Shown here: positions 1 through 61,479 of the stretch, piece after piece
Position numbering within the stretch: the first letter of the stretch is position 1
Layout: each line of letters begins with the position of its first letter
From: Macrostomum lignano
Lineage: Eukaryota
NCBI GenBank assembly: GCA_002269645.1
Contig: NIVC01003040.1
Coordinates: 1 to 64,000 of the forward strand
DNA length: 64,000 nucleotides
Reading direction: 5' to 3'
Notes under the pieces: generated by a model
Database searches by the model: none
Told to the model about the DNA's origin: nothing
The model's input: only the letters and a program-made list of their open reading frames with translations
Position numbers and translations under genes: made by a program

Positions 1-3000
1 CGTCGGAGTCTTTGTCCAAATGTCGGGAATGCGTCGCCATCCGAGTCCTCAAGATGGTCGGGGATCCCATCTCCGTCGGAGTCGCGTTCCAGAGTAATCT
101 AGCAAAGAATAAAGCAGGACAACCATTTCAGCTATGGCACTACACATGAAATCTCATTGAGAAACCCCAGTGACAACCGCTAGGGCAGGCAAAATGGGGC
201 GTTCTTTTCCAGACGGTGCCCAATGCAGCTATGAAAGCAACTCCCAATGTCTGTGCTCAGCAGTAAACGTTCCGAAAGTCAGGGCTCTGCGCACAGTATC
301 AACACTCTTGCATATCCTCGCTCAAGAGTCAATGGAATGAGCATAGTTGCTTTAGCGCTGGTAGTGGAATGATGTTACTGATGGAGTGCCCTCAGCCATT
401 TAACAGTAGAAAGACCAGGCTATTTTTCCCCATGGGGAAAGACCACGGGGTGTATTACAAATACACACGACCCATTTCACGATAGCTCGCAAACCGAATT
501 TCCGATTTTCGTAAAAGTCCAACATATGGATCAAAATTTTTCGCCATTTCCGACGAACCAACTTTCAAAGTCATCCGACGTCAGCATCGTCGAGATATTC
601 AACGATTCTTGTCGAAGACACTGGTGGCAAGGACAACCAACACTACACTGTATAAACCCTTATGATGAATCCATATTGGCTCAATAATCTGAGTCCATCT
701 GTTGTAGAAGCCTTTGTTCTCAGCATCCCAGGCACCAGGGTCCCCTTCATCACCGTCTGGAGCATCGGCGGCGACCGTCGAGACCTTCAACAAAAGCACC
801 CGATCGGCATCTCAGAGACAGCAGCTGCGTTCCCAAAAACTGAAATGGAAGAATCCTCTTCTGCAGGCAGCATTCAGTCAGTAGACACAATCGGTGAATG
901 AAATGGACGACGGCGACCCTCTAGGCTGACATGTAGACATACAGGCGACCTTCTGGACCTTCAACGGAGTGCCACCACGCGGCCCCGACAAGCCGGCACC
1001 CCCAACATCGTGATTTTTCTTTCAAGGCACCAAACCAGGCATGTCTGCGTATTATACAATGATCCTGCACCATGTTCAGCATTCAGCTCTGTCTGGACGA
1101 CCTTCGGGACCTTCCGAGTGCACCTTGCGGCCCCGACGAGCTGACACCGCCAACATCTTGATTTTTCTATCAAGACACCAAACCAGGCATTTCCGCGTAT
1201 CATACAATGCTTTTGCACCATGTTAAATTCGAAACTGCGAACATCGTCAGCGGACTGCCGCAACGGACAAGCTCTACGGCATCCGACGCCTGTGGGACAC
1301 CTTTGTCAGTCAGCTGCGCCATCCTGTCCTTTCCGGCCGTACCTCTGCTTCGACGAAACTCTGGTTGTCTACTGGGGTGTGGACTGTGACTTCACGGTCT
1401 TTCTAAAGGAGAAGCCCGGTCTTCTTCTTCCATTCGGGCGCGCTCGGGCCAGGGCCCATGGCACCGGGCGTCAGATCGCGCCCGCCTTCCCGAGGAAGTT
1501 CAACACCGCGGTGCAGTTCTCGAAAACTGCCGCGGGATCCGGGCTTGGCCCCAACGGTCGCAATGGTGCCAAGCTGTTCCTGCTGACATCGACTGGAAAT
1601 CCAGAGATTCAGGATGACATGGACATCCGCTATGTGTTCAATACGGAAATCTGCACTGGCAAAGGGCACTGCTGTCCACTACTTTTGCATCACAGGAATC
1701 CGATGCTCGGCTGGCCAAGGGCTCAGAGGTGTGGAGTGGTAGGCAAGTTGTTTGCGATCATGGCTGATCCATTCAGAGGACACTGGTACAGCATCACATG
1801 TGACAGATTCTTCTCGAGTCCAGCGCTGGCCAATCACTTTTACCGGGAAAAGGGATTCACGTTTCTTGAACAGTGATGCGCACTCGTGGTGGCCTGCAAG
1901 CCGATCTCAAGAATTCAACTCAAAACATGGCTCCACACACGAGCGAATTCCGGTTTTCTGAGAAGCTCACGTGTGTGTCCTACTGCCTGTTCAGATCCTT
2001 CTGCTCTGAATTTGCTGTAATATCATTTTTGACATACTGTAATATCATTTTTGACATACTGTAATATCATTTTTGACATACTGTAATATCATTTTTGACA
2101 TACTGTAATATCATTTTTGACATACTGTAATATCATTTTTGACATACTGTAATATCATTTTTGACATACTGTAATATCATTTTTGACATACTGTAATATC
2201 ATTTTTGACATACTGTAATATCATTTTTGACATACTGTAATATCATTTTTGACATACTGTAATATCATTTTTGACATACTGTAATATCATTTTTGACATA
2301 CTGTAATATCATTTTTGACATACTGTAATATCATTTTTGACATACTGTAATATCATTTTTGACATGCTGTAATATCATTTTTGACATACTGTAATATTAT
2401 TTTTGACATACTGTAAAATCATTTTTGACATACTGTAATATCATTTTTGACATACTGTAATATCATTTTTGACATACTGTAATATCATTTTTGACATACT
2501 GTAATATCATTTTTGACATACTGTAATATAATTTTTAACAAATTAAATATTTTTTTTCAGTCGCTAGTTAAATCTGTAACTCTCCAATTTAACATGGTAC
2601 AAATGCATTGTAGAATATGCAGACATGCCTGGTTGGAGCCTTAATAGAAAAATCACGATTTTGGTGGTGCCAGCTCGTCGGGGCCGCGTGGTGGCACTCC
2701 GTTGAGGGTCCCGAAGGTCGCCTGTATGTCTACAGGTCAGCCTAGAGGGTCGCCATCGTCCATTTCATTCACCGATTGTGTCTACTGACTGAATGCTGCA
2801 TGCAGAAGAGGATTATTCCATTTCAGTTTTGGGAACGCAGCCGCCTCTGAGACGCCGATCGGGTGCTTTTGTTGAAGGTCCCGACGGTCGCCGCCGTTGC
2901 TCCAGACGGAGATGAAGGGGACCCTGGGGCCCGGGACGCTAAGAACAAAGGCCTCACGACCGATATGCATAGTTTGTTGAGCCGACGTGGTTTCATGATG

Positions 3001-6000
3001 AGATTGTGTGAGCAGAAAAATTTTGCCAATGTTGGTGGTTTTTGCCACCAGACACCCCGAGGAGAATCGCTGAATATCTCGACGATGCCAATTTTTCGTG
3101 ATTCTCAAAGTTGCTTCATCAAATAGAGCGGACAGACAGACAAAGGAAAAATGTGTGCATTTGAAATACACCCCATGGTCTTTCTACTGTTTACCAAATC
3201 TACTGTTGCCAGCTATGATTGGTTGGTGTAGTTTTGAGTAAGAATATAAGAGATGAAACTGCCTGTTTGGGCGAGGGATTGTGAGTGCTCTACTCCCAGT
3301 GTTTGTTTTCATGCTGCAACAGCTCATACGAACGAAGGTTTCGATTGGATTGCGACTGGCTCAGAAAATTGATTTGTGCAAAAAGTTTTCCATAACTCTA
3401 AAAATGATTTGCTAGTTGTGTTGCGCTTGAGGAATGAACAAAGTAAATATTGAGCTCCACTTACTAGGAATGCCGTCCCCATCGTCATCCTCTAGATAGT
3501 CTGGAACTCCGTCGCCATCGCTGTCGCCCTCCAGGTGGTCTGCCCGAGCAGGTCAGTCGAAATAATTCGGAACATATTTTTATCCCCACCAAGATCAGTG
3601 AAGAAGGGCGAACAAGAAAGGAAAGGTCACTGTATTGAGAGACAGAAAAGCTCTAGCAACTACAAGGTAAGACTCTTGCAGTGCCCTCCTGGTAGAGGAA
3701 ATGCGGCATGAAATACCAGCATGAAAGCTCGCGGACAAAGTGTTAGAAAACAAAAAAATACGAGTATATTACGAAAATTTGCTAAGAACTATTGGCAGAG
3801 CTGTAAAAGAACGAACGAGGATCTAATAGGATGTCTAAAGGTAATCTAAACATACGTAGCAAAAAACAGCAAAATCAACTTCAAGACTTCTCGAAGGTTC
3901 TGATCTCACATACCCGGAATTCCATCGCCGTCTTCGTCCTCCAAGTAGTCAGGAATGCCGTCGCCATCACTGTCGCCTTCAAGGTGGTCGGGGATGCCGT
4001 CGCCGTCTGAATCAGGGGTTGCTGGAGCCGGGGCAGACTTCTTGGAGGCTTTTGCTGGCGGCGGCTTCTTGGCCCCTGCCTTACCGCTAACTTTGACTGC
4101 TTCAGCCTCCTTCATCAGCTTCTTCTTCTGTTTTTGAGCCTCCCGAATGGCTTTATCGTCGGCGGCTTCGACACCAAACCAGCCTCCGCCACCACTGGGG
4201 CCACTACTTCCACTGCGAGGTTCCCTAACGGCACCGACGCTGTCACCCTGAGCTTGCTGACTGCGCATTCGGGTTACGGTGTCCTGGATCTGCTTGAAGT
4301 CCGACCGACAGTCTGGGATGCCATCGCCGTTACGGTCCGGATCGTCTGCGTCTGGAATTCCATCGTTATCGTCGTCGTCATCTACGTGGTTCATGACGCC
4401 GTCCATGTCGCTGTCTTGAGTGCGGTCGATGTAGCCGTCGTTGTCAATGTCCACATCGACGTCGTCCGGCACGCCGTCGCAGTCGTGATCATCAGCAAGC
4501 GACTTGAGCTTGCGCGTCTGCGGCTTCTTCTCGGCTTTTTCCGGCTTTGAGACCGTCTTGGTCGGGGCCGGCTTTTTCGGTGGAGTTGCAGCTTTTTTCG
4601 CCTCCTTTGCAGCCGGCTTCTTGGCTTGTGGTGGCGAAGCGGCTTTAGCTGGTTTTGCAGTCTTCTTTGCTGGAGTTGGCGGCGCGGGTGCTTTCTTAGT
4701 GGCCGCCGGCTTCTTTGCCGCAAGTGTCGGCTGAGTTGGCTTTTTTGCCGCTGGAGCATCGGGCTTCTTTGGGACAGCCTTAGCTGGCTTGGGTGGTGGC
4801 GGCGGCGGTGGCGGCGGCGGAGTTGCCTTCTTGGCTGCAGGCTTTGCCGCCGGAGGAGCTTTTTTAGTTGCGGCTGGTGCAGCCGGCTTCTTCTTATCTT
4901 CCTTCTTAGTATCCGGTTTAGAATTTTTCTTCTTATCCTTCTTGTCAGGTGATTTGCTCTTCACCTCCGCCTTCTTGTTGGCCGCGAGTTTCTTCTTGCT
5001 ATCAGGTTTGCTTGGTGCTTCAGCCTGTTCTGCCACTTCTTCCGGCTTCTTTTTCTGCAGCTTGATGCGCGTGTGCATCATGGGATCCTTGATGCGGTTG
5101 CCCAAGCCTTTCTTGTGAATCTCGTGCGCGGACACCTGCGACTTCTTGGCCTCGATGAGTTCCTGTTCTTCCTCGGCCTCCTTGCGCGAGATCAGCACCT
5201 TTTGGACCTTGCCTTTGCCGGAGCGGACCACCTTGTAGAGAATCGATTCGTCGCGACGGCAGTCGGGCACTCCGTCGCCGTTGGAGTCCGGATCGCGCTC
5301 GTCCGGGATGCCTGCGAGGTTTGTAGATGTGTAATCTCGATCAATAAAAGCCGACCAGCCAAACCCAACCCGATGCAACCTTTCTACCATTTTTGCAGAT
5401 AAGTTTGCATGGGGCCTTGTTGTTTGTTTTCGAGTGGGTTGGTCGTGGCGACTTCTCTTCCACGGTTCTCGAAGTTCTTTCGTGTCGCATAACTTGCTGC
5501 ATTCTATCGTTTCCTAACCTACAACCCAAGCAACCCAACTTCTCCCACCGTCGTTGTCATCGTCCTCGTCAACGTGGTTGAGCTGCCCGTCCCAGTCGGA
5601 GTCCTGAGTCCTGTCCAGCTTGCCGTCGTTGTCGTTGTCATCGTCCTCCTCGTCCGGGATGCCGTCGCAGTCGCGGTCACCCGGGTCGCCAAGGTTGGCC
5701 TCGTTGTTGGCGTTTGCTCGGGCCTCGTCAGCTGCGGGCAAGACGAAACAAAAATGCTGCTTTCAGGAACTGTATGAGAGTACAAACTCTGGTTGTGAGT
5801 GCATGGCAGTTACTAATTGTTAGCACACAGTTCAGTATCTTCCTCGGTTTTTAATTTCCAAGTGGCTCCGATGTTTGAGCAATAGCTATAATTCAGAAAC
5901 TTAAAATAATTCACGGAGTGAGCCTTCAATATTGCACCAAAGTCACAAAAAATTGTTAGAATTAGATGAGATGCTTTTGTTAGGCAGATGAGTGGCCGGC

Positions 6001-9000
6001 ACCGCTAAACGCCTTGACAAACTCTTGGATAATTCGAACGCATTGCGTTATCAGCTGCGAGCTCAAGTAAAAACAAACTTCGGAAACTGAAAACTGGTGG
6101 ATGGCTTGCCACCAAGCTGGGCATCTGTGACAAGCTTAAGGTTGGGAAAATTTTTATTCCGGTTAGTATTAAAAAGGATTGCTGAGTTGGGCAGCTGAGA
6201 GCTGGATAAGAGTGCCATACGAGTTCCTTCCCTTGAGTCCGTACGCCAACCCAATGAGAATTTGTGTCCTGTGCACCTTGTTTATCTAGCTTGTCTATTC
6301 CAGTCATTGTTAATGAAATAATACCAGGACAAAACACTGTTAGATTTGCAAATTAATTCCACACTTTAAATGAGAATTTATTCTAGAAACAATTGGGATT
6401 CACCAAAGTTAAAAAAAATTGAAAATAATTTCTTTTTCGATAAATGAAACAAAAGCTGTCGCGTCTCTTCAACTAGTGCTCGGGCTTTGAGTCGAACAGA
6501 ACGTCCATCAAGAAAACTTGTGCAGAAAAAAAAAATTGTATTGTATCACTAAAAGTACTTTGTTGGCAGTTACCTGACACGAATGCAGCTGAAAGGAGGC
6601 GAAAAGCATGTTGATGGGCGTTAGCTATGAATGAAATTATTGACGTTGGCACTGATAACGTCTACGATATCTTAGGCTTGGTTAAAGTACAATTAATTTA
6701 GTTGCACACATCATTGAACAACACATTACACTCGATTATATGGCTCGTAAAAATGAAAAAAACATTGCAAATGTTGCCTACAGTTTGTTGTTGTTGTGAT
6801 GGGTCCTCCGAGAGAGTTGGAACCCTTGTGGGGCTTGGGTGTCCTATCTGGCCTATGATCCCCCGTTATCTGGTTGGTCTCACTGACAGTGTGTACAACT
6901 TCTGGGGCTCATGCCTTCCAGGTGCTCCATTTACCAGCTCCCTTTGCAGGTAGGTTCACCTAGCGCAATGACCTCTCATAGGAGCATAGAGAGTAAGTTT
7001 ATCAGCCAGGCCGCCCAGTCACACAATGTACCCTCCCGGTGGAGTGCGCCAAACAGACAATCATAATTGAGACCGTCTTTACGGCCTATGTTGCCTACGA
7101 CTCAGACTAAGCACAGCAAGTCAGTTAAACTAAAAAAACGTTAAAAAACAATAAAAAAACTAAGCTAATAAGAAGAAACTAATTAACTTGAAGGCACGCC
7201 GTGCAACTAAAAGAAGTTGTAAGCGTACTTGCTACTGTCAATTGAAGCAAATCAATGCTCAACATTAGTAAGCCCATGTGAATAAATATATGATGTCGAG
7301 TTATGTCAGCTGACTACTGAATCGGTTTACACTACTCAATGCTGCCTACTGGGTGGGGATAACTTAAATGAAAATTAAAATCGGAGCAAACTAAAATCGC
7401 CACCACAGCCAAAACAAAAGATCAAATTGAAAGTGTATGAGGGGGAGCAAATGTGGGCACGAACTGGGATTCGGGAAGGGACCAACCATTTAGAACGCTT
7501 GAGTCCCCCGTCTCAGGAGGCGGAAGTCCTTCCGGATACCTCAGCGAGTAGTAGTTCATTTTTTTCTGCAACTTCCTAATGAGCAAATGCTCTGGAAAGA
7601 CAGGATCAAGGTAATGTACTTTGGAAAGCAATTCGGGGAAGTTTCTAATATACATTGCTATTTTGGCAAATACAATTCCTATCCTGTGCAGAATTTCATA
7701 CGCATTCATTCCAGTATTACACGGAAGAACTCTTGGGGCTGTAATTAGATTACATTGACATGGTGAATTAGTACAAGCATCTAAAAACTAATATAAGGTA
7801 GTAGCATGATATGCACCAAGCAGTTCTGCCGCATGAATCCAATAAGTTTTATAATCGCATAAATGCAAATTATCGAAGGCTAATTGCGCTGCTGTTATCG
7901 GGCAAAAAGCGCGCGAGCGAGCGAAGCCGCAGCGCAGTGTTGGCGTTCAATCTACAGGATAGCGGCTAGAGGCGGGACGGCTTTGCTACTAGCAAACTGC
8001 TGTTGAAAACGCGCGCATTCTTATCAGGGACCGTCAATAGCAGCTGCCGCGGGATCAGACAAAACGGAATCCACACGGAGCGTCTCACCTGGTAAAGCGT
8101 CCACGGCGTCGAGGTTCTTGTACAGCAGAAACGACATGGAGTCCGGGTCGAGGTGGTCCGGCACGCCGTCATTGTCGTCGTCGTCGTCCAAATGGTCGGG
8201 AATTCCATCGCCGTCGCTGTCTCTTGGCACGCAGTCTATGATCCCGTCGCCATTTGAGTCTTCGTCATCTCTGTCCGGGATGCCGTCATTGTCGTCATCG
8301 TCGTCCCACTCGTTCAGGACGCCATCGTTGTCGCTGTCCTGCTTGTTGTCAAGGTAGCCGTCGTTGTCATCATCGGGATCGATTATATCTGGGATGCCAT
8401 CGCAGTCGTGGTCCTGCAGGTGGTCGGGTATGCCGTCGTTGTTCATATCATCATCGATGCTATCCGGGATGCCATCCCCGTCCCGGTCGGGGAAAAGATC
8501 GGCCTGTCCGTCACCGTCCGAGTCTGCGTCAACGTTGTCTGCATGAAGATTAGAAAGGGATATCCAAATTTATTTTTAATAGCTTCAAAAACTTTCTAAG
8601 TATTTGCAGCGTCTGAGAATTTTCCAGACTGCCTACTCGGAAAAGTAGAATATAGCTCGTATTGTAAAGCTCGTTTTACAACTGGGTTATAAATATCAGA
8701 CTGGAGAGAAAATTTCTGAAGATCGCTTTTGGAAGACGTATGGCCGCAGACCTGGGGACTGAAAGCTGGATGTGTTCGATCGATATGCGAAAGGCTGCAT
8801 ATGGAACCAAATGCACTGGTGCAAGTACAGCGGAGGGGATAGAGAGTGTAAGCATCGCGACCTTTCGAATGCAGCTGCAAGGGAGCGTTTGTTCCCGGAT
8901 GGCTGCTTGCTTGTGCAGCACCACCCCATGGCTTCTAAACTAGTTCGACAGCTGCTTCCATCCGCTTCTGACCTTCGTATACCTCCCGTCCTCCCGTTGC

Positions 9001-13519: not shown

Positions 13520-16500
13520 ATGGCCAAGGTCGTGAACCCACCGCCGCGCTACACCCACCCCGAGTGGACATTCAGCAACAATCAAAAGTATCGCAACGCC
13601 GAGCTCGAGCGGGCCGCCGCCGAACGGCTCAAAGCCGAGTCGGACCGCATCATCGAGGAGACGGCCAAGAAGACGGCCGCAGCCCAGGCCGACGTTGATA
13701 AGAAGCTGAGTGAGTGCAGATTCAGTGCAGATTGGATGGTAGATTCAGTGCAGATTGGGTGGTAGATTCAGTGCAGATTGGGTGGTAGATTCAGTGCAGA
13801 TTGGGTGGTAGATTCAGTGCAGATTGGATAGTAGATTCATTGCAGATTGGGTGGTAGATTCAGTTCAGATTTGGTGGTAGATTCAGTGCAGACTGGGTGG
13901 TAGATTCATTGCAGATTGGGTGGTAGATTCAGTTCAGATTGGCTGGTAGATTCAGTGCAGATTGGATGGTAGATTCAGTGCAGACTGGGTGGTAGATTCA
14001 TTGCAGATTGGGTGGTAGATTCAGTTCAGATTGGCTGGTAGATTCAGTGCAGATTGGATGGTAGATTCAGTGCAGATTGGATGGTAGATTCAGTGCAGAT
14101 TGGATGGTAGATTCAGCGCAGACTGGGTGATAGATTCAGTGCAGATTGGGTGGTAGATTCAGTGCAGATTGGGTGATAGATTCAGTGCAGATTTGGTGGT
14201 AGATTCAGTGCAGACTGGGTGGTAGATTCAGTGCAGATTGGGTGATAGATTCAGTGCAGATTTGGTGGTAGATTCAGTGCAGACTGGGTGGTAGATTCAG
14301 TGCAGATTGGGTGATAGATTCAGTGCAGACTGGGTGGTAGATTCAGTGCAGATTGGGTGATAGATTCAGTGCAGATTTGGTGGTAGATTCAGTGCAGATT
14401 GGGTGGTAGATTCAGTGCAGACTGGGTGGTAGATTCAGTGCAGATTTGGTGATAGATTCAGTGCAGATTTGGTGGTAGATTCAGTGCAGATTGGGTGGTA
14501 GATTCAGTGCAGACTGGATGGTAGATTCAGTGCAGACTGGGTGGTAGATTCAGTGCAGATTTGGTGGTAGATTCAGTGCAGATTGGGTGGTAGATTCAGT
14601 GCAGATTGGATGGTAGATTCAGTTCAGATTGGATGGTAGATTCAGTTCAGATTGGATGGTAGATTCAGTTCAGATTGAATGGTAGATTCAGTTCAGATTG
14701 GATGGTAGATTTAGTGCAGATTGGATGGTAGATTCAGTGCAGATTGGATGGTAGATTCAGTGCAGATTGGATGGTAGATTCAGTGCAGATTGGATGGTAG
14801 ATTCAGTGCAGATTGGATGGTAGATTCAGTGCAGATTGGATGGTAGATTCAGTGCAGATTGGATGGTAGATTCAGTGCAGATTGGATGGTAGATTCAGTG
14901 CAGATTGGATGGTAGATTCAGTGCAGACTGGGCCTTAGATCCAGGTCTACCGTGGATAAGTACTTCCATCGAATAAAATCCGAAAATGATTTTTTTCTTT
15001 TCTTACCTCCCAGACCAGCGTCTCAACGACGTGAAGTACTGGCGCGAGGAGGTCGACGAGAAGCTCGCCGGAGTCAGCGGCGAGATTGACAGGCTGGGCG
15101 CCTTCATCAGCCGAGTTGACAAAGCGCTCGAGTCGTACCAGGAGCCGCTGCACATCTCCCAGCAGTGCCTCATCAACCGGTGAGGAGAAGCGCCAGTAAT
15201 AAATATTATAGAATACCTCATACTGAATAATATTAATGATAATTGATTACACCTGTCCCAATTGGGCCAGATGTCGGTGCAACCGACAGCTCAGCCGCAG
15301 CTATTGCGCGGCGCATTTGAAGGCTGCGTATGGCTGTTCAGTCCAAGGACTCGGGGGGGGGGTGGGGGTCGCCACACACCCAGCTAATGCTGGCACCCAT
15401 TTTACAGCTGGGTGAACTGAAGCAATGCAGAGTTGTGCCTTGCTCAAGGGCAAGAACTGAACCCCCGACCTTTCAGTCGTGAACCGACGCTCTGAACACT
15501 AGGCTACAACCCCCTACTGAAAGAGTAGCAAGCAAAGAATGTGAAGCGGTTCTCTGATAGTGTCTGATAGTGTCTGGTAGTGTGTGGTAGTGTCATAGTA
15601 GTGTCTGGTAGTGTCTGGTAGTGTCTGGTAGTGTTCTGATAGTGTTCTGGTAGTGTCTGGTAGTGTTCTGATAGTGTTCTGGTAGTGTCTGGTAGTGTCT
15701 GGTAGTGTCTGGTAGTGTCTGGTAGTGTGTGGTAGTGTCTGGTAGTGTCTGATAGTGTCTGGTAGTGTGTCCTCCCTGCATCTTCTACTTGAGTAGTCAG
15801 TTAGGGATTACCTAAAAGCTCATCAACCCCGCAGCGAGGGCCGCATCGGAATCGACCTGGTCCACGACGATGTCCAGAAGGAGCTGCTGAAGGAGGTGGA
15901 GGTGAACCAGGGCGCCCAGGCGCTGCTCTTGAAGACGCTCGAGCAGGCCAAGGAGCAGCTCAGGCTGAACCGCAAGGCCAAGTACCAGCTGGAGAAGGAC
16001 ATCGCCGACAAGCGGAGCGCCGAGCAGCTCGACTCGCACTGCGTGGCGCTCAAGGGCAACTCGGCCGGCCTGGGCAGGTCGCCCTGCGCCGTGGGCATCG
16101 ACAGCAAGTTGGTGGCGCGCTCTTTGGCTTTTTGAGTTTGCATCTGTTGTTCTGCATCTTGTCCGATTCATGACTCAGGCCTTGTGATTTCTGTGAAACT
16201 TCCTCCGTCTCTCTCCCCGCTCATCTCCCTTCCTCTCCGCCCCTCTCCCTTCCTCTCCGCCCCTCTCCCTTCCTCTCCGCCCCTCTCCCTTCCTCTCCAC
16301 CCCTCTCCCTTCCTCTCCACCCCTCTCCCTTCCTCTCCGCCCCTCTCCCTTCCTCTCCACCCCTCTCCCTTCCTCTCCGCCCCTCTCCCTTCCTCTCCGC
16401 CCCTCTCCCTTCCTCTCCACCCCTCTCCCTTCCTCTCCGCCCCTCTCCCTTCCTCTCCGCCCCTCTCCCTTCCTCTCCGCCCCTCTCTTCCTCTCCGCCA

Positions 16501-23052: not shown

Positions 23053-25178
23053 TCAATCATCGATTTTTTCATCGCTCCAGTCGACGCGGGTGATCCGCAG
23101 GCGATGGTCTCCGGGGGCTCTGATGAGGCCGATTGATCCCAGCATCAGCTCCTCCAGCCTCTCCGGCTCGGCTTTCTCGGCGTCGCCCAGCTCAAATCGG
23201 AAGCGGCTGAGCAGCGAGCCGAAGAGGGTCAGCAGCTCGCGCTGCGCCAGCTGCTCGCCCAGGCAGGCCCGGCGCCCGATGCCGAAGCTCACGGCCTGGT
23301 CCAGCCGGCGGCAGCGCCCGGACTCCGGCTCGATGAACCTCTCGGGATTGAACCGCTCCGGCTCCGGGAAGTGCTCCGGGTCCCGGTGCGTGGCGAACAG
23401 GTTCAGCATCACGAAGTCGCTCGGCTCCACGGTGCAGCCCAGCACCTCCGTGGCCTGGGCAGTGCAGGTCAGGGGGCATGGTAGGGAGGGGCTTTTAGCG
23501 TATTTTGACCCCCCCCCCCAAATCCAAACCTTAGCTGCTGACCCGCCAGCCCTCACCCTGGGCTGCTGATCCCCCAATCCTCACCCTGGGCTGGTGACCC
23601 CCCCAGCCTTCACCCTGGGCTGCTGACCCCCCCTCCCAGCCCTCACCCTGGGCTGCTGACCCCCCCAAGTCCCCACCCTAGTGACCCCCGAGTCCTCACC
23701 CTGACTACGCGGCTGTTGACCCCCAGTGGCAGCGGTACCACCAGGCGCAGAGTCTCCTCAATGAAGGCCCTGGTGAACGGCAGCTTCTCTCTGTCGGCCA
23801 TGCTGACTGGCCTCCAGTCGGTGCCGATGGCGGCGGCCACCTCCAGGCGGCAGCGACGCTGCATGTCGGGGTGCAGTGCGGCCATGAGCAGCAGCCAGCG
23901 CAGGCTGTTTGCGGATGTCTCGGTGCCGCCCAGGTAGATGTCGTAAGCGGAGCGGTACAGCTGGTAGTCGTCGAAGGTGCCAACGCTGCCGGTCTCCCGG
24001 AGCTGTCGCTGCTGCTCCAGCAGGTAGGCCTCGACATAGTTGGCCGGCTGGCTGTCCGGGTCCGTCCAGAAGTTCGGATCCAGCCGGCCGGCCCGGACAG
24101 CCTCCACTCGGGTGCGCATGAACTCCAAAACCCAATTGTTGCTGCGGTCCAGAGCTCGAGCCCCGGACGACAGGGCCAGCATAGGCCGGATGGGGAGCCA
24201 GGGGTAGCAGGTGATGAGCAGGGTGACAAAGTCTCCGTGGGTCAGCGTGCTGAGGTGGGACACGTACTCCGACAGCTCACTGTCTGAGTAGTCGGCTCGG
24301 GTTGAGAAGAGCAGCTGAGAGATGACGTTAACAATGGCCCGCGTGATCAAGTCTGAAGGCGGGGAGGGGGGCGGGTGAGCAGAGTTTTCAGTAGAATAGG
24401 GCACAGCAAGAATGCAGTCAAGCCAGATAAAACTGCTCCAATCTGAACTCTTAAACCAGAAAATGCGAATGACGCACGAGACGGCCATTGGGGCAAAGTA
24501 AAAATTTGGCCAAGTAAGCTGGACGGAAAACTGGTCAGACTGAGATTTCAAAGTTCCAAATGCTCTCTGCTCAGTACTGGAAGCGCGCACTCGAAAAGTT
24601 CGAAATTCTAAAAAAATTTCCTTACCACTCGCGTCGACTTCAGCCGACGCGCGGCCGTCGAGGGCGTCGGCCAGCGCATCCAGCAGACTGCGGCACTCCG
24701 CCTCGATCAGCGCCTCCGCCTGCGGCCCGCCGAGGCCCAGCCGGCGGAAGGCGCGCACGGCGAATCGACGATGCTCCGCCCAGAGAGGCCCGTCGGACAT
24801 GGCGAGGCCGCGCTTCCTTGACAGGTAGCGGAAGAACGGCGTGTCCATGCGGTAGCCAAAGGCGTCGCCGCGGCCGATCAGCGCCTCGCGCAGGGCGGCG
24901 TGGCCGCTGATGAGGACGAAGCGCTGCGTGCCGAGCCGGAAGGCCGTCACGGGGCCGAAGCGGCGGCTCAGGCCCTGCAGGTACAGGTGGAAGCGGAAGC
25001 GCCGGCCGAACCGCAGCGCTTTGGCAAAGAAGGCCGGCAGCTGGCCGAGAAATGGCGGCCCGCCGGGTCCTGGCGGAGTCCGGCCGCTTGAGAGCCGCAA
25101 CTGCCGCTGCCGCTTCTGCAAAAGCAGCAGCAGCAGCAGCAGTAGAAAGGACAGCGACAGTGCGAATTCGAGCAACAT
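23053..25178 (-). CDS. Cytochrome P450, clan 2 (CYP2-like), about 535 aa
   Basis: Exons 25178-24626, 24352-23700, 23454-23053 join in phase. N-terminal TM anchor plus PPGPGG hinge, WAEHRRF (WxxxR), I-helix GGTETSANSL, EETLR (ExxR), PERF, heme motif FGIGRRACLG. Confidence 0.95.
23550..23700. repeat. About 30-bp repeat (CCTCACCCTGGGCTGCTGACCCCCC..) in P450 intron 2, reiterating the splice donor
   Basis: On the minus strand each unit contains AGG/GTGAGG, the same as the real donor at 23700/23699. Confidence 0.8.
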
Positions 25179-25334
25179 GTTTGGCACTTCTTAGCCATGA
25201 AGGCTGGGCAGTGCAGGGCTTTCCCGGTGCTTTTATACCTTAATTAGCTCACGTGAGCAGAGTGCGGGCTGGGGTGCGCTGCTAGTCGTGCTCTGCCTCC
25301 CAGGTTGGATACAGACAGCTGACCCGCCCACGTA

Positions 25335-40908: not shown

Positions 40909-47096
<6,188 letters not shown>

Positions 47097-51595: not shown

Positions 51596-52111
51596 TTCGA
51601 TACGGCTTATTTATTAATATTTTAAAGTCCCAATGTTGACGCGGAGGTGGCATGGTCTTATTCGATCTTGTTATTCGATTGCTAATTTTCAACAACAGCT
51701 CATCCGGGCATTTCCTCTGCTCTCTTGCTTGACAAGTCGGCCTGTTTTTTTCACCTGAACAAACAAGCTGTTTGTTTTTTTACTCGTTTTACAAGAATCG
51801 GCAGTCAGTTGAAATCCCATTGATTGCCGGACGTTCGCTTCCTATTTTGGCGGCCGCCGCCGCTGCTGCAAGCTCCCCAGAGAGACGGACAGCCGGGCTG
51901 GGGAGATTAGGGCTTCGGCTGAGATCCGGGCAAACCTTTAATTATTGATTTTGCCCAGCAGGACTCGGACAGAGAGAGAGAGAGATTGATGAAGGCGACT
52001 CTCTGGCTTGACAGTACAAAATTTAAATGAACGGCACTGAAGCCGGCATTTTTGTACCAGTTGCTTGCGAAAGAGAAACTTTCCAACTGGGTACCAAACT
52101 GTAGGAGAGCG

Positions 52112-53340
52112 CTTTGAGAACACTGGGATGCCAGCTTTGAGAACACTGGGACACCAGCTTTGAGAACACTGGGATGCCAGCTTTGAGAACACTGGGACAC
52201 CAGCTTTGAGAACACTGGGATAACAGCTTTGAGAACACTGGGACACCAGCTTTGAGAACACTGGGACACCAGCTTTGAGAACACTGGGATGCCAGCTTTG
52301 AGAACACTGGGACACCAGCTTTGAGAACACTGGGACACCAGCTTTGAGAACACTGGGATGCCAGCTTTGAGAACACTGGAATGCCAGCTTTGAGAACACT
52401 GGGACACCAGCTTTGAGAACACTGGGATGCCAGCTTTGAGAACACTGGGACACCAGCTTTGAGAACACTGGGATAACAGCTTTGAGAACACTGGGATGCC
52501 AGCTTTGAGAACACTGGGACACCAGCTTTGAGAACACTGGGATAACAGCTTTGAGAACACTGGGACACCAGCTTTGAGAACACTGGGACACCAGCTTTGA
52601 GAACACTGGGATGCCAGCTTTGAGAACACTGGGACACCAGCTTTGAGAACACTGGGACACCAGCTTTGAGAACACTGGGATGCCAGCTTTGAGAACACTG
52701 GAATGCCAGCTTTGAGAACACTGGGACACCAGCTTTGAGAACACTGGGGGACGCCAGCTTTGAGAACACTGGGATGCCAGCTTTGAGAATACTGGGATGC
52801 CAGCTTTGAGAACACTGGGATGCCAGCTTTGAGAACACTGGGACACCAGCTTTGAGAACACTGGGGGACGCCAGCTTTGAGAACACTGGGATGCCAGCTT
52901 TGAGAACACTTGGATGCCAGCTTTGAGAACACTGGGGAACGCCAGCTTTGAGAACACCGGGATGCCAGCTTTGAGAACACTGGGACACCAGCTTTGAGAA
53001 CACTGGGATGCCAGCTTTGAGAACACTGGGGGACGCCAGCTTTGAGAACACTGGGACACCAACTTTGAGAATACTGGGATGCCTGCTTTGAGAACACTGG
53101 GATGCCAGCTTTGAGAACACTGGGACACCAGCTTTGAGAATACTGGGACACCAGATTTGAGAACACTGGGACATCAGCTTTGAGAATACTGGGATTCCAG
53201 TTTTGAGAACACTGGGATGCCAGCTTTGAGAACACTGGGGGACGCCAGCTTTGAGAACACTGGAACACCTGGGACACCAGCTTTGAGAACACTGGGATGC
53301 CAGATTTGAGAACACTGAGACGCCAGCTTTGAGAACACAC
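52112..53340. repeat. 23-bp minisatellite (GCTTTGAGAACACTGGGATGCCA)n
   Basis: Direct reading. Confidence 0.95.
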
Positions 53341-53994
53341 GCAATAAGTCTGAGTGCACAAGCACCAAATCTCAAGAACAAGGGTGCTGTGACGCCAGCT
53401 TTAAGAACGGGTGCACCAACTTCAAATCAGGAGACGCCAAACTTTTACGATTTCGACTAAATATGAACCCTCAATCCGCTTGAAATAATTCTAACTCAAA
53501 TCTGTATTGATGAAGCTGGCTGCAACCGCAGTCAGTCGGAGATTTAACTCGCGATAAGCCGGGCGCCACATCGTCTGCCTTGGTGGAAATTCTTTCATAA
53601 ATTTCGATCTTTTTACTTTGACAAAAATGAAACAACAACGTATTTGTGTTTTTCTCAAGTGCCATATAAAAAAACTTCTCAAGAGCAGAGTCGGGTGGCG
53701 GTGAGTTAGCAGACTACGGGCATCTCTCCCGCTGTGCTTCAGTCTCTTTCTTCTCCATTATTGCTGTAAAAAACGATGTCGAACAGCAAATGACGACAAT
53801 AAGACGGAGCCGTACGCTTCTGCTGCCAGGGCAGGGTGGGTGGCAGCCAATCCGAAGCGGGGGGCCGCGCACTGCAGGGTCTGGGGGCGGGGCGGTCTCG
53901 GGGGAGGGCTGCGCTGCTTGTCTTAAGCTGTTGAAACCCTGCAGCTCGGCACTGCTCCTCCATCTGACCGCCCGGCTCCCCAGCTCTCAGCAGG

Positions 53995-54483
53995 ATGTCC
54001 GCCCATCGTTCTGCCGCCGCAGCAGCTCCGAACGAGCTGGACGCTGAGACTGTCGGCTTCCTGATGGAGGCCAGCCGGCTCAGCGCGGAGGAGCTGCGGT
54101 CGCTGTACGCGCAGTTCAAGGCCTCGCAGCCTGGTGGGCGAACCTCGGACTTCATGAACTACGTGTCCAAGTCGCAGAGCTCCAGCGCGCAGCTGCGCAA
54201 GAAGGCGCACCAGTTCTTCGACCTGTTCGACAGGAACAAAGACCGCAGCATCAGCCGGGACGAGGTGCTGAGCATCATGCACTCCGTGTTCCTCACGGCC
54301 AGGGACCGCGGCGTCCAGCTCAACAGGCAGCCCGAGGACGTCTGTGACGAGTTCTTCAGCAAGCTGGACGTCGACGGCAACAGCGAGATCTCCGAGGAGG
54401 AGTTCGTCCAGGGCGTGCTGTCCGAGCCCGACCTGCTGAAGATCCTGCAGAATCCCGAGGTGATGAACACTCTGAGCAGCTAG
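53995..54483 (+). CDS. Neuronal-calcium-sensor (recoverin/frequenin family)-like EF-hand protein, 162 aa, shortened
   Basis: The N-terminal helix pattern LDAETVGFLMEASRLSAEELRSLYAQF..QPGG matches NCS proteins. EF loops DRNKDRSISRDE and DVDGNSEISEEE. C-terminal EFVQGVLSEPDLLKIL. Putative TATA near 53664, 5'-UTR donor at 53701, acceptor at 53990/53993. Confidence 0.8.
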   Translation: MSAHRSAAAAAPNELDAETVGFLMEASRLSAEELRSLYAQFKASQPGGRTSDFMNYVSKSQSSSAQLRKKAHQFFDLFDRNKDRSISRDEVLSIMHSVFLTARDRGVQLNRQPEDVCDEFFSKLDVDGNSEISEEEFVQGVLSEPDLLKILQNPEVMNTLSS

Positions 54484-55435: not shown

Positions 55436-56856
55436 GGATCGAGTTTGTTAAGACAAAGGGGGAAGGCCCGTTTCACTGAACCCTGAGCATTCGGGTTGAT
55501 GCGTACGCTGGCTCATTTTCACATAGGATCTGAGTAGAAGTGAGTACGGCCGCTAACAGAATCGAACTTGGTAAACTCGACTAGTGCCTCCCCTAAGCCT
55601 TCTGGACTCAAAATTTAATGGTGATTTTAATATGCTTTGAGCCCCCCTCTCGATAAAAGCTGCTGGGCTGCAGCGGTCCAGCTAGCAGTAATTAAAAAGC
55701 CGTGGCGGAACGGAGCTGCGAGTTCCTTGGGCGACGAAAACGATTTATTTTTCATTAAAATATCAGCGGCGACGAATGCGCAGTTAATGCAGCGCCGCGG
55801 GTTTCTGGCGCGAGTGGGGTGGTCGGTTTAAAAATGCAGCTTTCCGCTTTTGTCTCTCCGCCGGAATTTCTGCTTCCATTTGCCATTTTCCTCCATTTTT
55901 TCGGGAGCCGGGTTGAGGAAGAATAGCAGTTTTTTGGGGGATTTTTGTAGCTCGCGCTACAATGGGATCGGTGAGCTGTGGCGGCCACCTCATCACCTCT
56001 GCATCCGCGATGTCTGATCTGTGAGCAGGAATTGAGCGATATATCCGATATATTTTATTTCAAGCAATCAAAGCTCATTGCTACGGTTGAATGCACTGGG
56101 AGCGTGACTATTTTATCGATTTTTTAACAGTAGAAAGACCAGGCTATTTTTCCCCATGGGGAATTGACCACGGGGGTGTATTACAAATACACACGACCGC
56201 TTTCACGATAGCTCGCAAACCGAATTACCGATCTTCGTAAAAGTCCACCATATGGATCAAACTTTTTCGCCCTTTCCGATGAACTAACTTTCAAAGTCAT
56301 CCGACGTCAGCATCGTCGAGATATTCAACGATTCTTGTCGAAGACACTGGTGGCAAGGACAACCAACACTACACTGTATAAACCTTTATGGTAAATCCAT
56401 ATTGGCTCAATAATCTGGGTCCATCTGTCGTAGAAGCCTTTGTTCTCAGCATCCTAGGCACCAGGGTCCCCTTCATCTCCGTCTGGAGCAGCGGCGGCGA
56501 CCGTCGGGACCTTCAACAAAAGCACCCGATCGGCATCTCAGAGGCGGATGCGTTCCCAAAACTGAAATGGAAGAATCCTCTTCTGCATGCAGCATTCAGT
56601 CAGTAGACACAATCGGTGAATGAAATGGACGATGGCGACCCTCTAGGCTGACCTGTAGACATACAGGCGACCTTCGGGACCTTCAACGGAGTGCCACCTT
56701 GCGGCCCTGATGAGCTGGCACCACCAACATCGTGATTTTTCTATCAAGGCACCAAACCAGGCATGTCTGCATATTATACAATGATCCTGCACCATGTTAA
56801 ATTGGAGAGTTACAGATTTATCTGGCGACTGAAAAATAGAAAATATATTTAATTTG

Positions 56857-57322
56857 TCAAAAATGATATTACAGCATGTCAAAAATGATATTACAGCATG
56901 TCAAAAATGACATTACAGCATGTAAAAATGATATTACAGCATGTCAAAAATGATATTACAGCATGTCAAAAATGATATTACAGCATGTCAAAAATGATAT
57001 TACAGCATGTCAAAAATGATATTACAGCATGTCAAAAATGACATTACAGCATGTCAAAAATGATATTACAGCATGTCAAAAATGACATTACAGCATGTCA
57101 AAAATGATATTACAGTATATCAAAAATGATATTACAGCATGTCAAAAATGATATTACATCATGTCAAAAATGATATTACAGCATGTCAAAAATGATATTA
57201 CATCATGTCAAAAATGATATTACAGCATGTCAAAAATGATATTACATCATGTCAAAAATGATATTACAGCATGTCAAAAATGATATTACATCATGTCAAA
57301 AATGATATTACAGCATGTCAAA
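56857..57322. repeat. 22-bp tandem array (GTCAAAAATGATATTACAGCAT), about 21 copies, at the inner end of the left arm
   Basis: Period 22 (56943, 56965). An inverted about 3-copy counterpart lies at about 60130-60195. Confidence 0.95.
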
Positions 57323-57397
57323 ATTGATTCGCCTGGGTAGAGGCAACTTTGCAACGGTGAAGTCTTCTACTTAAATCAATTATAGCAAATCACTGAG

Positions 57398-57739
57398 TCA
57401 TGTTCTTCGAAGCTTCCGAATGACCAGGCGAATGAACTGTTCAGCCGTGATGTTCTCGTGGACCGCAGGTGGGGCTGAATCCACAACCTCTCCACCGGTA
57501 ACACTTCGCAGGTAGCGCTTGATTTCTTCTGGGTAGTTAAACTGCATGACGGCGAACTGTTCCTGCTTACCAAATCGCTTCAGATATCGGGCCCAGATTG
57601 TGTACGCATCATGTCTGCCAGCCTTGCTGTTGCAATTTCTATAGCGCTCGCACCAGGAAATGAAGCCCTTGGCGTCGTTGTCTGTGGCTCCATTTTCTAT
57701 GAGATATCTGTGCAACAGTTGCACCTCAGTGACTGCCAT
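57398..57739 (-). CDS. Transposon passenger ORF, 113 aa, function unknown (weak KolX/P2X7-ballast-like motif)
   Basis: ATG at 57739 in good context (acaATGg), TGA at 57400-57398. Uninterrupted and non-repetitive, with globular-looking composition. A TATA box lies upstream. Confidence 0.65.
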   Translation of the reverse strand: MAVTEVQLLHRYLIENGATDNDAKGFISWCERYRNCNSKAGRHDAYTIWARYLKRFGKQEQFAVMQFNYPEEIKRYLRSVTGGEVVDSAPPAVHENITAEQFIRLVIRKLRRT

Positions 57740-57934
57740 TGTGTAAGGACGCAACCGGTTTGTGAATGGGATTTTAGCAAGATTCCGGAAAGACTGAAGA
57801 ACTGAAGATGTGCTGGTTTTTGTAACAGTGCAATCTCTCGCCTCGCTTTGCCTCCCTTTCTTCCAGGCGGTTATTCTTTCTTGATTCCCGAGCCTGAGGG
57901 CTTCGCGATGGCTGCTCTGAAAGTTCTGTGACTA

Positions 57935-57944
57935 CTTATATATA
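57935..57944 (-). promoter_or_regulatory. TATA box (TATATATAAG) for the passenger ORF
   Basis: Minus-strand TATATAAG about 25 bp upstream of an Inr-like TCAGAG (57920) and about 200 bp upstream of the ATG. Confidence 0.5.
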
Positions 57945-58453
57945 GTGCCTACAAAGGTATGTACTGATTTCACTGTGGGACGCAGGCGCATGCATTTTAT
58001 GCCGGGATTATATGTATGTTCCACCGCTGGTAACGATGAATAATCTATTGAAGCTTGGAAATGTCGTCCCTCCTGTTGAGTTTACTGTATCTGGGGCGGG
58101 GGGGGGGGCAACTGTTACTAGGGGGTTTAGCCACAGTCGGTCGGTCCCTGGAGGGGGTGGGGGGGTGACTCGCGTTCAGACTAAGAATATCTAACTCACG
58201 ACTCTCAATCCTGATTAGCTAGATTACCCCTGCAGGTATACCATCACTTCGTCTCAACTTCCATTCTGACGCACGTGTCCGCTGGGCCCATTAATTTAAT
58301 TAGTTTAATCTTTCTGATACTATTCAGCTTAGCTTCGCCAAATCTCTCGCACGTGGCAGAAACTGTTGCTGCTTGGGTAAACGTCTTATAAATTCTGCTT
58401 CTCGTCCAAACTGGCACACATCTATCCGGTAGAACAAATTCTCCTGCTTCTGA

Positions 58454-60128
58454 ATGGCAGAGACTCTTGCTGACAGCGATTCGGATGAAGAGTTTTCTCC
58501 AGATAAGAGTGGTCCAGATGAAAGAAAAATTCTGTTCGACATTTCTCATGACCCAATCAACTCCCCCCACATCCAAGACGATGGGCTAGTGACAGTTTTT
58601 CTCGGTTGACAGACGAACTCAATCTACGCATTAATTGGAAGGAGTGCGCTGAAACGGAGAGCGGCACACTGATGGGCTTCTTCGATGACTCCATGCTGGA
58701 TTTGATCACAGCTGCAACGAATGAGAGCATCAGCTCAACATGTGGAGACTCAGCTGAGCTGGCAAGCAGAATGGAGATTGAGGGGCTAATCGGTGCTCTA
58801 CTGTACAGCGGAGCCAACGATCTGCGCAATGTCGCCCTGATAGACTTGTGGAGCACTGATGTGAATTCTGGCTACCATCCACTGCTGCAGTGTGCGTTCA
58901 GCCGAAATCGATTTCTACTACTTTGGTGCAACCTGTGCTTCGAAACTGCCGAACATAGTCAGCGGACTGTCACAACGGACAAGCTCTACGGCATCCGACG
59001 CCTGTGGGACACCTTTGTCAGTCAGCTGCGCCATCCTGTCCTTCCCGGGCCGTACCTCTGCGTCGACGAAGCTCTGGTTGTCTACTGGGGTGTGGACTGT
59101 GACTTCACGGTCTTTCTGAAGGAGAAGCCCGGTCGCAATGGTGCCAAGCTGTTCCTGCTGACATCGGCTGGGAATCCAGAGATTCAGGATGACATGGACA
59201 TCCGCTATGAGTTCAATGCGGAAATCTGCACTGGCAAAGGAACACTGCTGTCCACTACTTTTGCATCATAGGAATCCGATGCTCGGCTAGCCAAGGGCTC
59301 AGAGGTGTGGAGTGGTGAGCAAGTTGTTTGCCGCTTGGCTGATCCATTCAAAGGACACTGGTACAGCATCACATGTGACAGATTCTTCTCGAGTCCTGCG
59401 CTGGCCAATCACTTGTACCGAGAAATGAGATTCACGTTTCTTGGAACAGTGATGCGCACTCGTGGTGGCCTGCCAGCCGATCTCAAGAATTCAACTCAAA
59501 CCATGGCTCCACACACGAGCGAATTCCGGTTTTCTGAGGAGCTCACGTGTGTGTCCTACTGCCCTAAGGCGGGCCGAAACGTGATGTTGCTGTCCACCAT
59601 GCACCACGACAGACAACTGCTTCCCAATGGCAAGCCTGTAGCAATAGGCACGTACTACAATTCTACCAAGAGTGGCACGGACACCTGCAACAGGATGTTC
59701 CGCACATCCGACTGCAAGCGAAAGTCCGACTCATGCGAGAAGGCAATCTTCTCCGGCGGCATACTCAACATAGCAGCTGTGAATGCCGCTGCCATCTGGA
59801 GACTGGCGCACCCGGAGCTCTGCGCCTCGCCGAACTATCGCAACGAGTTCCAGCGCAAGGCAGCTGCGCGACATCTGCAACCTCTGATCGAGAAGCGCTC
59901 GCAATCGGCCGCTCTTCTTCAGAATCTGTCCAATCATCACCGGCTGATGATCCAGCTCGCAGGTTGTCAAATCAACGACGAGCAAATGAAGGAACAGGCA
60001 AGCGTGCCTTGAGTGCGACAACAAGGAAGTGTTGCATATGTGATGAAGGAATTTGCCGAAGACACACTGCGATGAAAATTGACTCCGCTTTTGTGTCTAT
60101 GTGTCGGTGTTCAGATCCTTTGCACTGA
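58454..60128 (+). pseudogene. piggyBac (PGBD/DDE_Tnp_1_7-type) transposase, disrupted
   Basis: Acidic N-terminus MAETLADSDSDEEF (ATG at 58454). Catalytic motifs [16 protein letters not shown] and KSGTD, plus [15 protein letters not shown] and VMLLSTMH. C-terminal Cys-rich remnant CLEC..KCCIC...IC RRH. Lesions: frameshift near 58500-58560, nonsense TAG at 59269-59271 (CAG in the other copy), frameshift(s) near 59990-60030. Confidence 0.92.
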
Positions 60129-61479
60129 ATTTGCTGTAATGTCATTTTAGACATGCTGTAATATCATTTTTGACATGCTGTAATATCATTTTTTACAAAT
60201 TAAATATTTTATTTTTTCAGTCGCCAAATAAATCTGTAACTCTCCAATTTAACATGGTGCAAAAGCATTGTATAATATGCAGACATGCCTAGTTTGGAGC
60301 CTTGATAGAAAAATCACGATTTTGGGGGTGCCAGCTCGTCGGGGCCGCGTGGGTGGCACTCCGTTAAGGTCCAGAAGGTCGCCTGTATGTCTACAGGTCA
60401 ACCTAGAGGGTCGCCATCGTCCATTTCATTCACCGATTGTGTCTACTGACTGAATGCTGCATGCAGAAGAGGATTATTCCATTTCAGTTTTGGGAACGCA
60501 GCCGCCTCTGAGACGCCGATCGGGTGCTTTTGTTGAAGGTCCCGACGGTCGCCGCCGTTGCTCCAGACGGAGATGAAGGGGACCCTGGGGCCTGGGACGC
60601 TGAGAACAAAGGCCTCACGACCGATATGCATAGTTTGTTGAGCCGACGTGGTTTCATGATGAGATTTTGTGAGCAGAAAAATTTTGCCAATGTTGGTGGT
60701 TTTTGTCACCAGACACCTCGAGGAGAATCGTTGAATATCTCGACGATGCCGATAATTCGTGATTCTCGAAGTTGCTTCATCGAATAGAGCGGAAAATTTT
60801 AGCCCGTGTTCTGGATTTTCATGGCAATCGGTTAAATATTCTTGGAGATCCAGACAAAGGAAAATGTGTGTATTTGAAATACACCCCCATGGTCTTTCTA
60901 CTGTTAATGCGACTGGGTCCGCGAGTTACCGATATCCCTAGTGCCTTTTGGAGTGACTTGAGAGTGACTGCGGGAGAGACAGCGAGAGTGAGCTCATTGG
61001 CGACTCACATCTTTCTGCCAGCTAAGCAGGCGGGAGGGCCTTCGGGCGTGGTCCCGATCTCCTTCGATCGGCTCAAGTCGCAGGGAGCAGAAGAGGATGA
61101 ATGGAGGGCAAAAGCCGTGAAATTCGAGTTGCAGCCCTGAATGGGATGGAGAATTGGGAGATCAGCAGAGACGATAAGGCTCGGGAACGGGATGCGCGAG
61201 ACAAATAGGAGAGAAGAATTCAGAGAGAGAGATCAGGAGGCTTTAATCCGATTTAATCTGATTAAGGACCTGTTTACCGGTCAGGTGTGACACAAGGATC
61301 ACCTTAGAATAACGAATTCAAAAGCAGCATTGGGAAACTACAAGTGCAGAACTGAAATTGCATGAGCCTAACATTAATAAAGTAACAGAATCTGTCGTGA
61401 GACTTTCCGCTTATAATTTGAGTATATTTTTACTGGAAATGTGAGTGTGACGTTGCTCAGAATACATGCAGCATAGGAA

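Follow-up and report, generated by a model that had tools for sequence, protein, structure and literature searches.

The element analyzed here lies in a 64,000-nucleotide stretch of the genome of the flatworm Macrostomum lignano (positions 1 to 64,000 of contig NIVC01003040.1, assembly GCA_002269645.1; referred to below as the window). It is a piggyBac transposon with a small open reading frame (ORF) of 113 amino acids next to its transposase, and the question that it raises is whether this ORF is a second gene of the transposon and, if so, of what kind. The piggyBac transposon is usually treated as a one-gene element and is a major transgenesis tool, including in M. lignano; two-gene DNA transposons are known from Harbinger, from Kolobok and from a few piggyBacs with KolX-like proteins. 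A sequence-only reading of the locus had taken the ORF for an intact passenger gene with its own TATA box and had proposed that it may be a divergent relative of KolX and of the cytoplasmic ballast domain of P2X7. We consider it very likely that the ORF is a true accessory gene of the transposon and not a random passenger, and the element in the window is probably a copy of a two-gene piggyBac in which the ORF is a member of a co-inherited, strongly selected accessory family.

The features of the element are collected in Table 1. It had been described as TTAA-flanked and piggyBac-like, and we found the TTAA duplications, 14-bp terminal inverted repeats (TIRs) and matches to the Pfam transposase domain PF13843. 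The TIRs are perfect, the element starting with CAGTAGAAAGACCA and ending with TGGTCTTTCTACTG, with TTAA outside both, so that the ends are those of the piggyBac superfamily. Another copy of the family in the window, with an internal deletion, shares these ends, and the occurrence of identical ends at two insertions argues that they are true transposon termini. Inside the TIRs are subterminal inverted repeats of approximately 700 bp, made up of blocks that are 83-96% complementary, and the units of the 22-bp repeat in this region may be protein-binding sites. The copy number of the 22-bp repeat is very variable: the full copy has 21.6 units on the left and 3 on the right, and the right arm of the deleted copy has 23.9 (2015-2540).

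The ORF is encoded on the minus strand from an ATG at 57739 to a TGA at 57398. It is head-to-head with the transposase, in agreement with the coordinates and sequence given earlier, and a gap of 714 bp separates its ATG side from the transposase ATG at 58454. The reported TATA motif on the ORF strand is present as well (TATATAA on the minus strand, 57936-57942 in plus-strand coordinates), about 200 nt upstream of the ORF ATG, where it might serve as a putative promoter. Chance ORFs of 99-110 amino acids are present in meaningless frames of the same element. A length of 113 amino acids is therefore not unusual by chance, and the reality of the ORF rests on its homologues.

A word-indexed search with the 113-amino-acid ORF gave no relatives. 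Searching 1.8 billion representatives with phmmer recovered 15, with E-values from 3e-21 to 3.5e-4, and profile searches widened the family to approximately 45 clusters with E-values down to 6e-41, all of them standalone proteins of about 110 amino acids. The phmmer relatives are 81-141 amino acids long, the one exception being a 236-amino-acid M. lignano model (P0004, UniProt A0A1I8HFR5), which is also the only named relative. At its end this model has a diverged ORF-family copy (83% identity over 36 amino acids) fused to reprolysin/ADAM-like sequence, and it is probably chimeric; it shows at least one further diverged copy of the ORF in M. lignano. The source of nearly all of the family is marine metagenome assemblies of ENA or Logan, those of Tara Oceans among them, and long-contig assemblies are represented as well; neither the JGI metagenome contigs nor IMG/VR yielded relatives when scanned with a sub-family profile. 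No Pfam domain was detected in the approximately 45 clusters. A match of the window ORF to DUF7254 (Pfam, E = 0.006, below the cut-off) was rejected as noise because it is absent from 18 other members.

The consensus of the family reads M..(9)..YLR.GGAT..EI.DF.DWC...(8-16)..K..RY.VYRLWARLLR.RRTP.....F.F...LK.YLR..TGG.VVDA.PP..AI.V....FVKYVVR.LDDAF, and membership was judged by the core R-Y-x-x-Y-R-L-W-A ... F-x-F ... L-K-x-Y-L-R ... G-G-x-V-V-D ... F-V-x-x-V-V. The window protein aligns from M1 to the C-terminus, with an E-value of 3e-21 to its closest relative, and keeps the near-invariant residues R42 (invariant), Y46, W49, A50, L53, F67, R78, G83, D87 and F102; it departs from the family at R-R-T-P (F-G-K-Q) and in the acidic tail (R-R-T). 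Judged by these sequences, the ORF family is a real, previously unannotated gene family that extends from a flatworm to marine eukaryotes.

Selection on the family could be assessed from two members with 85% amino-acid identity (L020 and L022), which have 59 synonymous differences over 84 sites and 25 non-synonymous differences over 267 sites. The corresponding proportions are pS 0.71 and pN 0.094, and the corrected synonymous and non-synonymous distances (dS approximately 2.1, dN 0.10) give a dN/dS ratio (omega) of about 0.05 for this one pair. Nucleotide similarity between the two ends exactly at the ORF borders. In most other pairs the synonymous sites are saturated (pS 0.66-0.91, with pN 0.27-0.51), making dN/dS uninformative between most members. 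Two paralogues were recovered on 10 and 8 Tara contigs, respectively; within each, the ORFs have no nucleotide mismatches and the flanks differ by 1-9%, and since these contigs were selected for an identical protein, only the missing synonymous changes are informative. The pattern of substitutions indicates that the family is under strong purifying selection.

We further analyzed the surroundings of the family members. In the window and in six further independent elements, the member adjoins a DDE_Tnp_1_7 transposase, and all but one (L023) of the contigs with enough flank have a transposase beside the ORF; contigs of up to 3 kb (P0026, P0041, P0010 and P0018) are uninformative on linkage. The two genes are head-to-head, as in the window, in L002 (DDE_Tnp_1_7 at E = 1e-42), in L003 (tblastn E = 2e-22), in L024 (278 bp apart, with an intact 636-amino-acid transposase and an ORF of 130 amino acids) and in a locus with a decayed transposase that is represented in three assemblies (L014-16, on contigs of 0.75-2.8 Mb). 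They are tail-to-tail in L001 and in L017/18, the latter with 164 bp between the genes, an intact 769-amino-acid transposase and, in L017, an ORF of 105 amino acids. Both genes of L001 are enclosed by perfect, canonical ends (TTAA adjoining CCCTTCGTCGGTAACG) at 8520-8539 and 14098-14117, and a 146-bp repeat (x5.6) forms inverted arrays on either side of both genes of L014 (10519-11340 and 7054-7496). The subterminal-array architecture of L014 parallels that of the flatworm element, with an unrelated repeat sequence. The L017 and L018 contigs are the same sequence, and no element boundary could be read from comparing them in the TIR search.

The two genes also diverge in step. With the L024 element as the reference, the transposase and ORF identities were 47% and 48% for L002, 42% and 44% for L001, 42% and 43% for L014, 39% and 43% for L003, 28% and 34% for the window, and 27% and 28% for L017. 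The ORF and transposase identities thus fall together, as predicted by the long-term co-inheritance of a two-gene unit, which argues against repeated capture. The earlier suggestion of a two-gene piggyBac is borne out by the repeated linkage of the small ORF family to transposases, its location inside TIRs and the purifying selection acting on it.

The transposase of the window copy is itself no longer intact. ORFs 58606-59271 and 59305-60012, which share one frame, match PF13843 (DDE_Tnp_1_7) at E = 1e-25 and 9e-16 and cover the first and second halves of the profile, respectively. The acidic N-terminal ORF at 58454-58609 (MAETLADSDSDEEF...) is in another frame than the DDE core (58606-60012), and the frame has to change somewhere from 58543 to 58609, an interval that contains a C7 run. 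A 24-nt GT..AG ‘intron’ at 58588-58611 was rejected on inspection, as it did not restore the transposase frame. The reading frame is split by an in-frame TAG at 59269-59271; the deleted copy has CAG at this codon, which marks the stop as a nonsense mutation (C>T) private to the window copy. The Cys-rich remnant (KCCICDEGICRRH) is comparable to VCCFKCHKGVCKDH of the intact L017 transposase. Homopolymer errors of long reads could account for the two frame changes, an explanation that is unlikely for the nonsense codon. In an alignment to the L017 transposase, the aspartates of VDEA, CDRFF and GTD are kept, and these we take to be the catalytic triad by reference to T. ni piggyBac, so that the window element encodes a DDE_Tnp_1_7 transposase with a catalytic DDD. 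With a nonsense codon and frame changes in the transposase and with its Cys-rich domain out of frame, the window copy is non-autonomous. It resembles the piggyBac superfamily in its TTAA duplication, its short TIRs (those of L001 begin with CCCTTCG...), its subterminal repeats and its DDE_Tnp_1_7 transposase, which has an acidic N-terminus and the remnant of a Cys-rich domain at the C-terminus, and differs from it by the addition of a second, separately oriented conserved gene and by the pseudogene state of the transposase.

We attempted to predict the structure of the ORF protein with AlphaFold2. The model from the single sequence was poor (predicted local distance difference test, pLDDT, 54), and a model based on the family alignment was used, with a pLDDT of 74.3 and a predicted template modeling score (pTM) of 0.67. 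This model is all-helical, with helices at 5-15, 20-34, 39-56, 71-81 and 99-110 plus a two-residue hairpin, and Foldseek found no neighbours for it, the best E-values being 6.3 in PDB and 3.2 in BFVD. Conservation in the family is highest in a basic amphipathic helix, R-Y-x-x-Y-R-L-W-A-R-L-L-R-x-R-R-T-P, which is bordered by an acidic second helix and an acidic tail; a conserved basic block spans positions 39-62, with at least 60% K/R at eight columns, to which K74 and R78 are added. The transposases associated with the family have very acidic N-termini.

These properties recall the PIF/Harbinger elements, the best-known precedent for such a partner protein among eukaryotic cut-and-paste transposons, in which a Myb-like protein binds both the subterminal repeats and the transposase. 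The likeness consists of a separate small helical protein that is co-inherited with a transposase; the transposase superfamily is a different one, the ORF family lacks a Myb/SANT domain (none of 19 members matched a SANT, Myb or trihelix domain in Pfam at E<=1), and the functional parallel is one that we infer. Taken together, the basic helix, the acidic transposase N-termini, the subterminal arrays and the PIF/Harbinger precedent favour a cofactor or regulator, and we tentatively propose, by analogy, that the protein acts in this way by binding the element DNA or the transposase. Proteins of the family, about 110 amino acids long, are encoded inside piggyBac elements beside the transposase, in either orientation, and have probably been inherited jointly with it over a long time. 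According to the proposal, the protein, small and predicted to be compact and helical (five helices and a tiny hairpin), would act in the nucleus on transposition, and it might bind either the element DNA, at the subterminal repeats, or the transposase, via the highly acidic N-terminus of the latter. The family, its linkage to transposases, its place inside the TIRs, the co-divergence and the selection are observed; the expression of the ORF, the binding partner of its product and the positive or negative sign of its effect on transposition are presumptive. In a stronger version, which is possible and somewhat more doubtful, one deep piggyBac lineage would have in this family an obligatory or strongly stimulating cofactor with a new fold, or else the family would be a counter-defence factor encoded by the transposon.

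The main rival to a cofactor is an element-encoded regulator, that is, a self-limiting inhibitor of transposition or an anti-silencing factor comparable to VANC, the proteins of plant VANDAL elements that bind tandem motifs of their own element. The genetic evidence is the same for both, and a regulator would agree with what appears to be a separate transcription unit in variable orientation to the transposase and with the long tandem arrays inside the elements (22 bp x21.6 in the window, 146 bp x5.6 in L014). However, the arrays of different elements are unrelated to one another and the genome is rich in minisatellites throughout, the protein has no likeness to any known regulator, and its sequence does not separate an inhibitor from an anti-silencer or a cofactor. 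The resemblance to VANC is pure analogy: both are accessory proteins encoded by an element with tandem repeats as possible sites, but VANDAL is Mutator-like, from another superfamily and another kingdom, and sequence kinship is absent. We consider the regulator rather unlikely.

The relationship to KolX was evaluated separately. KolX is the second protein of Kol0 Kolobok elements and is similar to residues ~475-595 of P2X7, a region with two Zn ions and seven cysteines (Kojima & Bao 2022, PMC9587614). The same study (Data S6) reports that a few piggyBac families also encode a KolX-like second protein, namely piggyBac-2_GrCh and piggyBac-14_PI, whose proteins resemble KolX in its C-terminal portion and lack most of the cysteines. 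A KolX-like gene on a piggyBac had been regarded as undescribed in the sequence-only reading and is thus already published; our search of the literature on piggyBac second ORFs or endogenous M. lignano piggyBacs found nothing beyond that study. The published precedent is one reason to consider that the 113-amino-acid ORF might be an extremely divergent relative of these proteins. KolX-like proteins (those of Kol0 Kolobok, piggyBac-2_GrCh_2p and piggyBac-14_PI_2p) and the ORF family are also alike in being small second proteins of TTAA-targeting cut-and-paste transposons that share an R-x3-Y-R-x-aromatic motif, and the local helix-loop-helix order is compatible.

The profile comparisons did not support this kinship. 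The Pfam domain P2RX7_C (PF20478) was matched by none of the 19 family members even at E<=1, compared to the positive control, piggyBac-2_GrCh_2p, which matched it above the cut-off at E = 1e-5. Alignment of the family profile to KolX/P2X7 profiles with hhalign gave a probability of 0.3-0.8% (E 0.07-0.19, score 13-15), close to the reversed control (score 11.9, E 0.32), and the positive control piggyBac-2_GrCh_2p gave 97.8% (E = 8e-13, score 75, 74 columns). With the ORF-family profile, no P2X7 structure and nothing related was found in PDB at E<=10, in contrast to a transposon-only KolX profile, which found the P2X7 chains 9e3m, 8tr5 and 6u9v at 2e-18 to 4e-17. The latter replaced a phmmer search of PDB with piggyBac-2_GrCh_2p alone, an insensitive single-sequence test that missed P2X7. 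Foldseek with the AlphaFold2 model did not return a P2X7 chain from PDB either, the model being of moderate confidence and Foldseek weak on small sub-domain matches.

The motifs led to the same result. We tested the KolX C-terminal core R-x-x-A-Y-R-x-F ... L-G-x-G-x-R-x-[VI]-P-x-C ... I-R-x-x-F-P ... G-x-Y-x-G-F, and the match was limited to R42-x3-Y46-(R/T)-x-W49. The L-G-x-G, P-x-C and G-x-Y-x-G-F motifs are absent from the family, which continues after W49 with A-R-L-L-R-x-R-R-T-P ... F-x-F ... L-K-x-Y-L-R ... G-G-x-V-V-D, unlike KolX; the N-terminal helices differ too, and the additional conserved C-terminal helix, F-V-K-Y-V-V-R-x-L-D-D-A-F, is missing from KolX. The motif spacing noted in the sequence-only reading is therefore only partly upheld. 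The R-H-x-A-Y-x-x-aromatic likeness is real, and a relaxed hhalign reproduces the same register, with R42/Y46 on RHCAY and P70 on LPSC, but statistically it is noise and the other defining motifs are lacking. The WCxxxxxC motif is present as W29 C30 ... C36; across the family, a single cysteine column is conserved (C30, 77%), and members carry 1-6 cysteines at non-conserved positions. The Zn-binding seven-Cys cluster of the ballast domain is absent from the family, which alone would not exclude membership since most of the cysteines are missing from the published piggyBac KolX-like proteins too. Having failed the Pfam, hhalign, PDB profile and Foldseek tests, homology to KolX or the P2X7 ballast domain is very improbable, and the 113-amino-acid ORF does not belong to the family of the published piggyBac KolX-like proteins.

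Several observations weigh against a two-gene piggyBac with a functional accessory protein. The window has only one ORF-bearing copy of the element, the second copy (404-3189) lacking the 5’ half of the transposase as well as the ORF. The ORF-bearing copy is a fossil, its transposase carrying a private nonsense codon and frame changes, and an intact 342-nt ORF is expected by chance in a copy that is approximately 5% diverged. The earlier claim of an intact passenger gene thus stands in so far as the ORF is full length and belongs to a selected family, but its intactness beside a dead transposase proves little alone. Overall, the family has only a mildly basic character (median pI 8.2), and with a predicted fold that has no neighbour in PDB or BFVD, a DNA- or transposase-binding role is an analogy and not evidence. 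The 8.2-kb L023 contig holds a decayed family member without a piggyBac transposase. Finally, the abundant Tara paralogues P0026 and P0041 have no transposase in 1-1.4 kb of flank, and they may represent a domesticated or solo state in some hosts.

In L023 (77-2781), the decayed member has W49L and a short N-terminus, and fragments of a P-element-like transposase (THAP and TNP-like RNaseH) lie 1.1 kb upstream of it. P0026 and P0041 (L004-L013 and L025-L032) recur in the same Tara Oceans samples and could be multi-copy elements or domesticated genes of an abundant planktonic eukaryote. A breakpoint among the P0041 contigs was considered as an element end and rejected, as it is an indel in homologous non-coding DNA.

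L023 and the many Tara samples with P0026 and P0041 are what would be expected if the ORF were a host gene that had been captured or domesticated, or a neutral passenger, and only happened to lie within or close to piggyBac elements. Against this are the divergence of ORF and transposase in step across seven elements, the location of the ORF inside the TIRs of two unrelated elements (the window and L001) and the strong selection, and no member is fused to or embedded in a host-type protein except for the evidently chimeric P0004 model. We regard a host gene or passenger as even less probable than the KolX relationship. A chance reading frame with no coding function, for which only the 99-110-amino-acid frames elsewhere in the element speak, is negligible given homologues at E-values down to 3e-21 (6e-41 with profiles), conserved length and motifs and a dN/dS far below 1.

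Table 1. Features of the two piggyBac copies in the window (positions in the 64,000-nucleotide stretch).
Feature	Position	Strand	Remarks
piggyBac element	56128-60903		4776 bp, TTAA-flanked
Left TTAA target-site duplication	56124-56127		
Left terminal inverted repeat CAGTAGAAAGACCA	56128-56141	+	identical letters open the deleted copy at 404
Left long subterminal inverted-repeat region	56166-56920		pairs with 60132-60894
22-bp tandem array, unit TGTCAAAAATGATATTACAGCA x21.6	56855-57328		subterminal, between left arm and ORF 3’ end
Accessory ORF, member of the piggyBac ‘ORF2’ family	57398-57739	-	113 amino acids, intact, full length compared to the family
Divergent intergenic region between ORF and transposase	57740-58453		TATA-like motif, G-runs
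piggyBac transposase pseudogene	58454-60012	+	N-terminal ORF and DDE core in different frames
C-terminal Cys-rich domain remnant (..KCCICDEGICRRH..)	60013-60128	+	yet another frame, after the stop at 60012
22-bp repeat, three inverted units	60132-60197		right arm
Right terminal inverted repeat	60890-60903	-	
Right TTAA target-site duplication	60904-60907		
Internally deleted copy, same piggyBac family	404-3189	+	94-95% identical, same termini

The deleted copy is flanked by TTAA and TTTA, unlike the full copy. It retains approximately 630 bp of the middle of the transposase and has a 134-nt insertion between 1421 and 1555. Just downstream of it is an ATG-initiated ORF of 494 amino acids on the minus strand (3906-5390) with no Pfam match. 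A 514-amino-acid ORF on the minus strand at 23643-25187 has a cytochrome P450 domain (PF00067, E = 7e-46) and is presumably a host gene or a large exon, and a single-exon gene on the plus strand at 53995-54483 encodes an EF-hand protein of 162 amino acids. From 13718 to 64000 the window is crowded by more than 25 minisatellite arrays with periods of 4-170 bp, several of them longer than 1 kb, and long ORFs that overlap these arrays, such as 45850-46965 and 51907-53361, are artefacts.

What is new here is a different, unannotated protein family on a piggyBac chassis, with no Pfam family, fold neighbour or name. By the analysis, an appealing connection to KolX and the P2X7 ballast domain is corrected as unsupported, and the family is set apart from the published KolX-like piggyBac proteins. 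The L024 and L017 elements provide cognate pairs of intact transposase and ORF with which the hypothesis can be tested directly. A conserved and strongly selected second protein that co-diverges with the transposase across hosts suggests an undescribed piggyBac biology, in which the protein may be a cofactor, a regulator or a counter-defence factor. If the protein is an obligatory or strongly stimulating cofactor, or a counter-defence factor, these elements would be piggyBacs with two genuine components, and they would give a means of modulating transposition of the piggyBac type.

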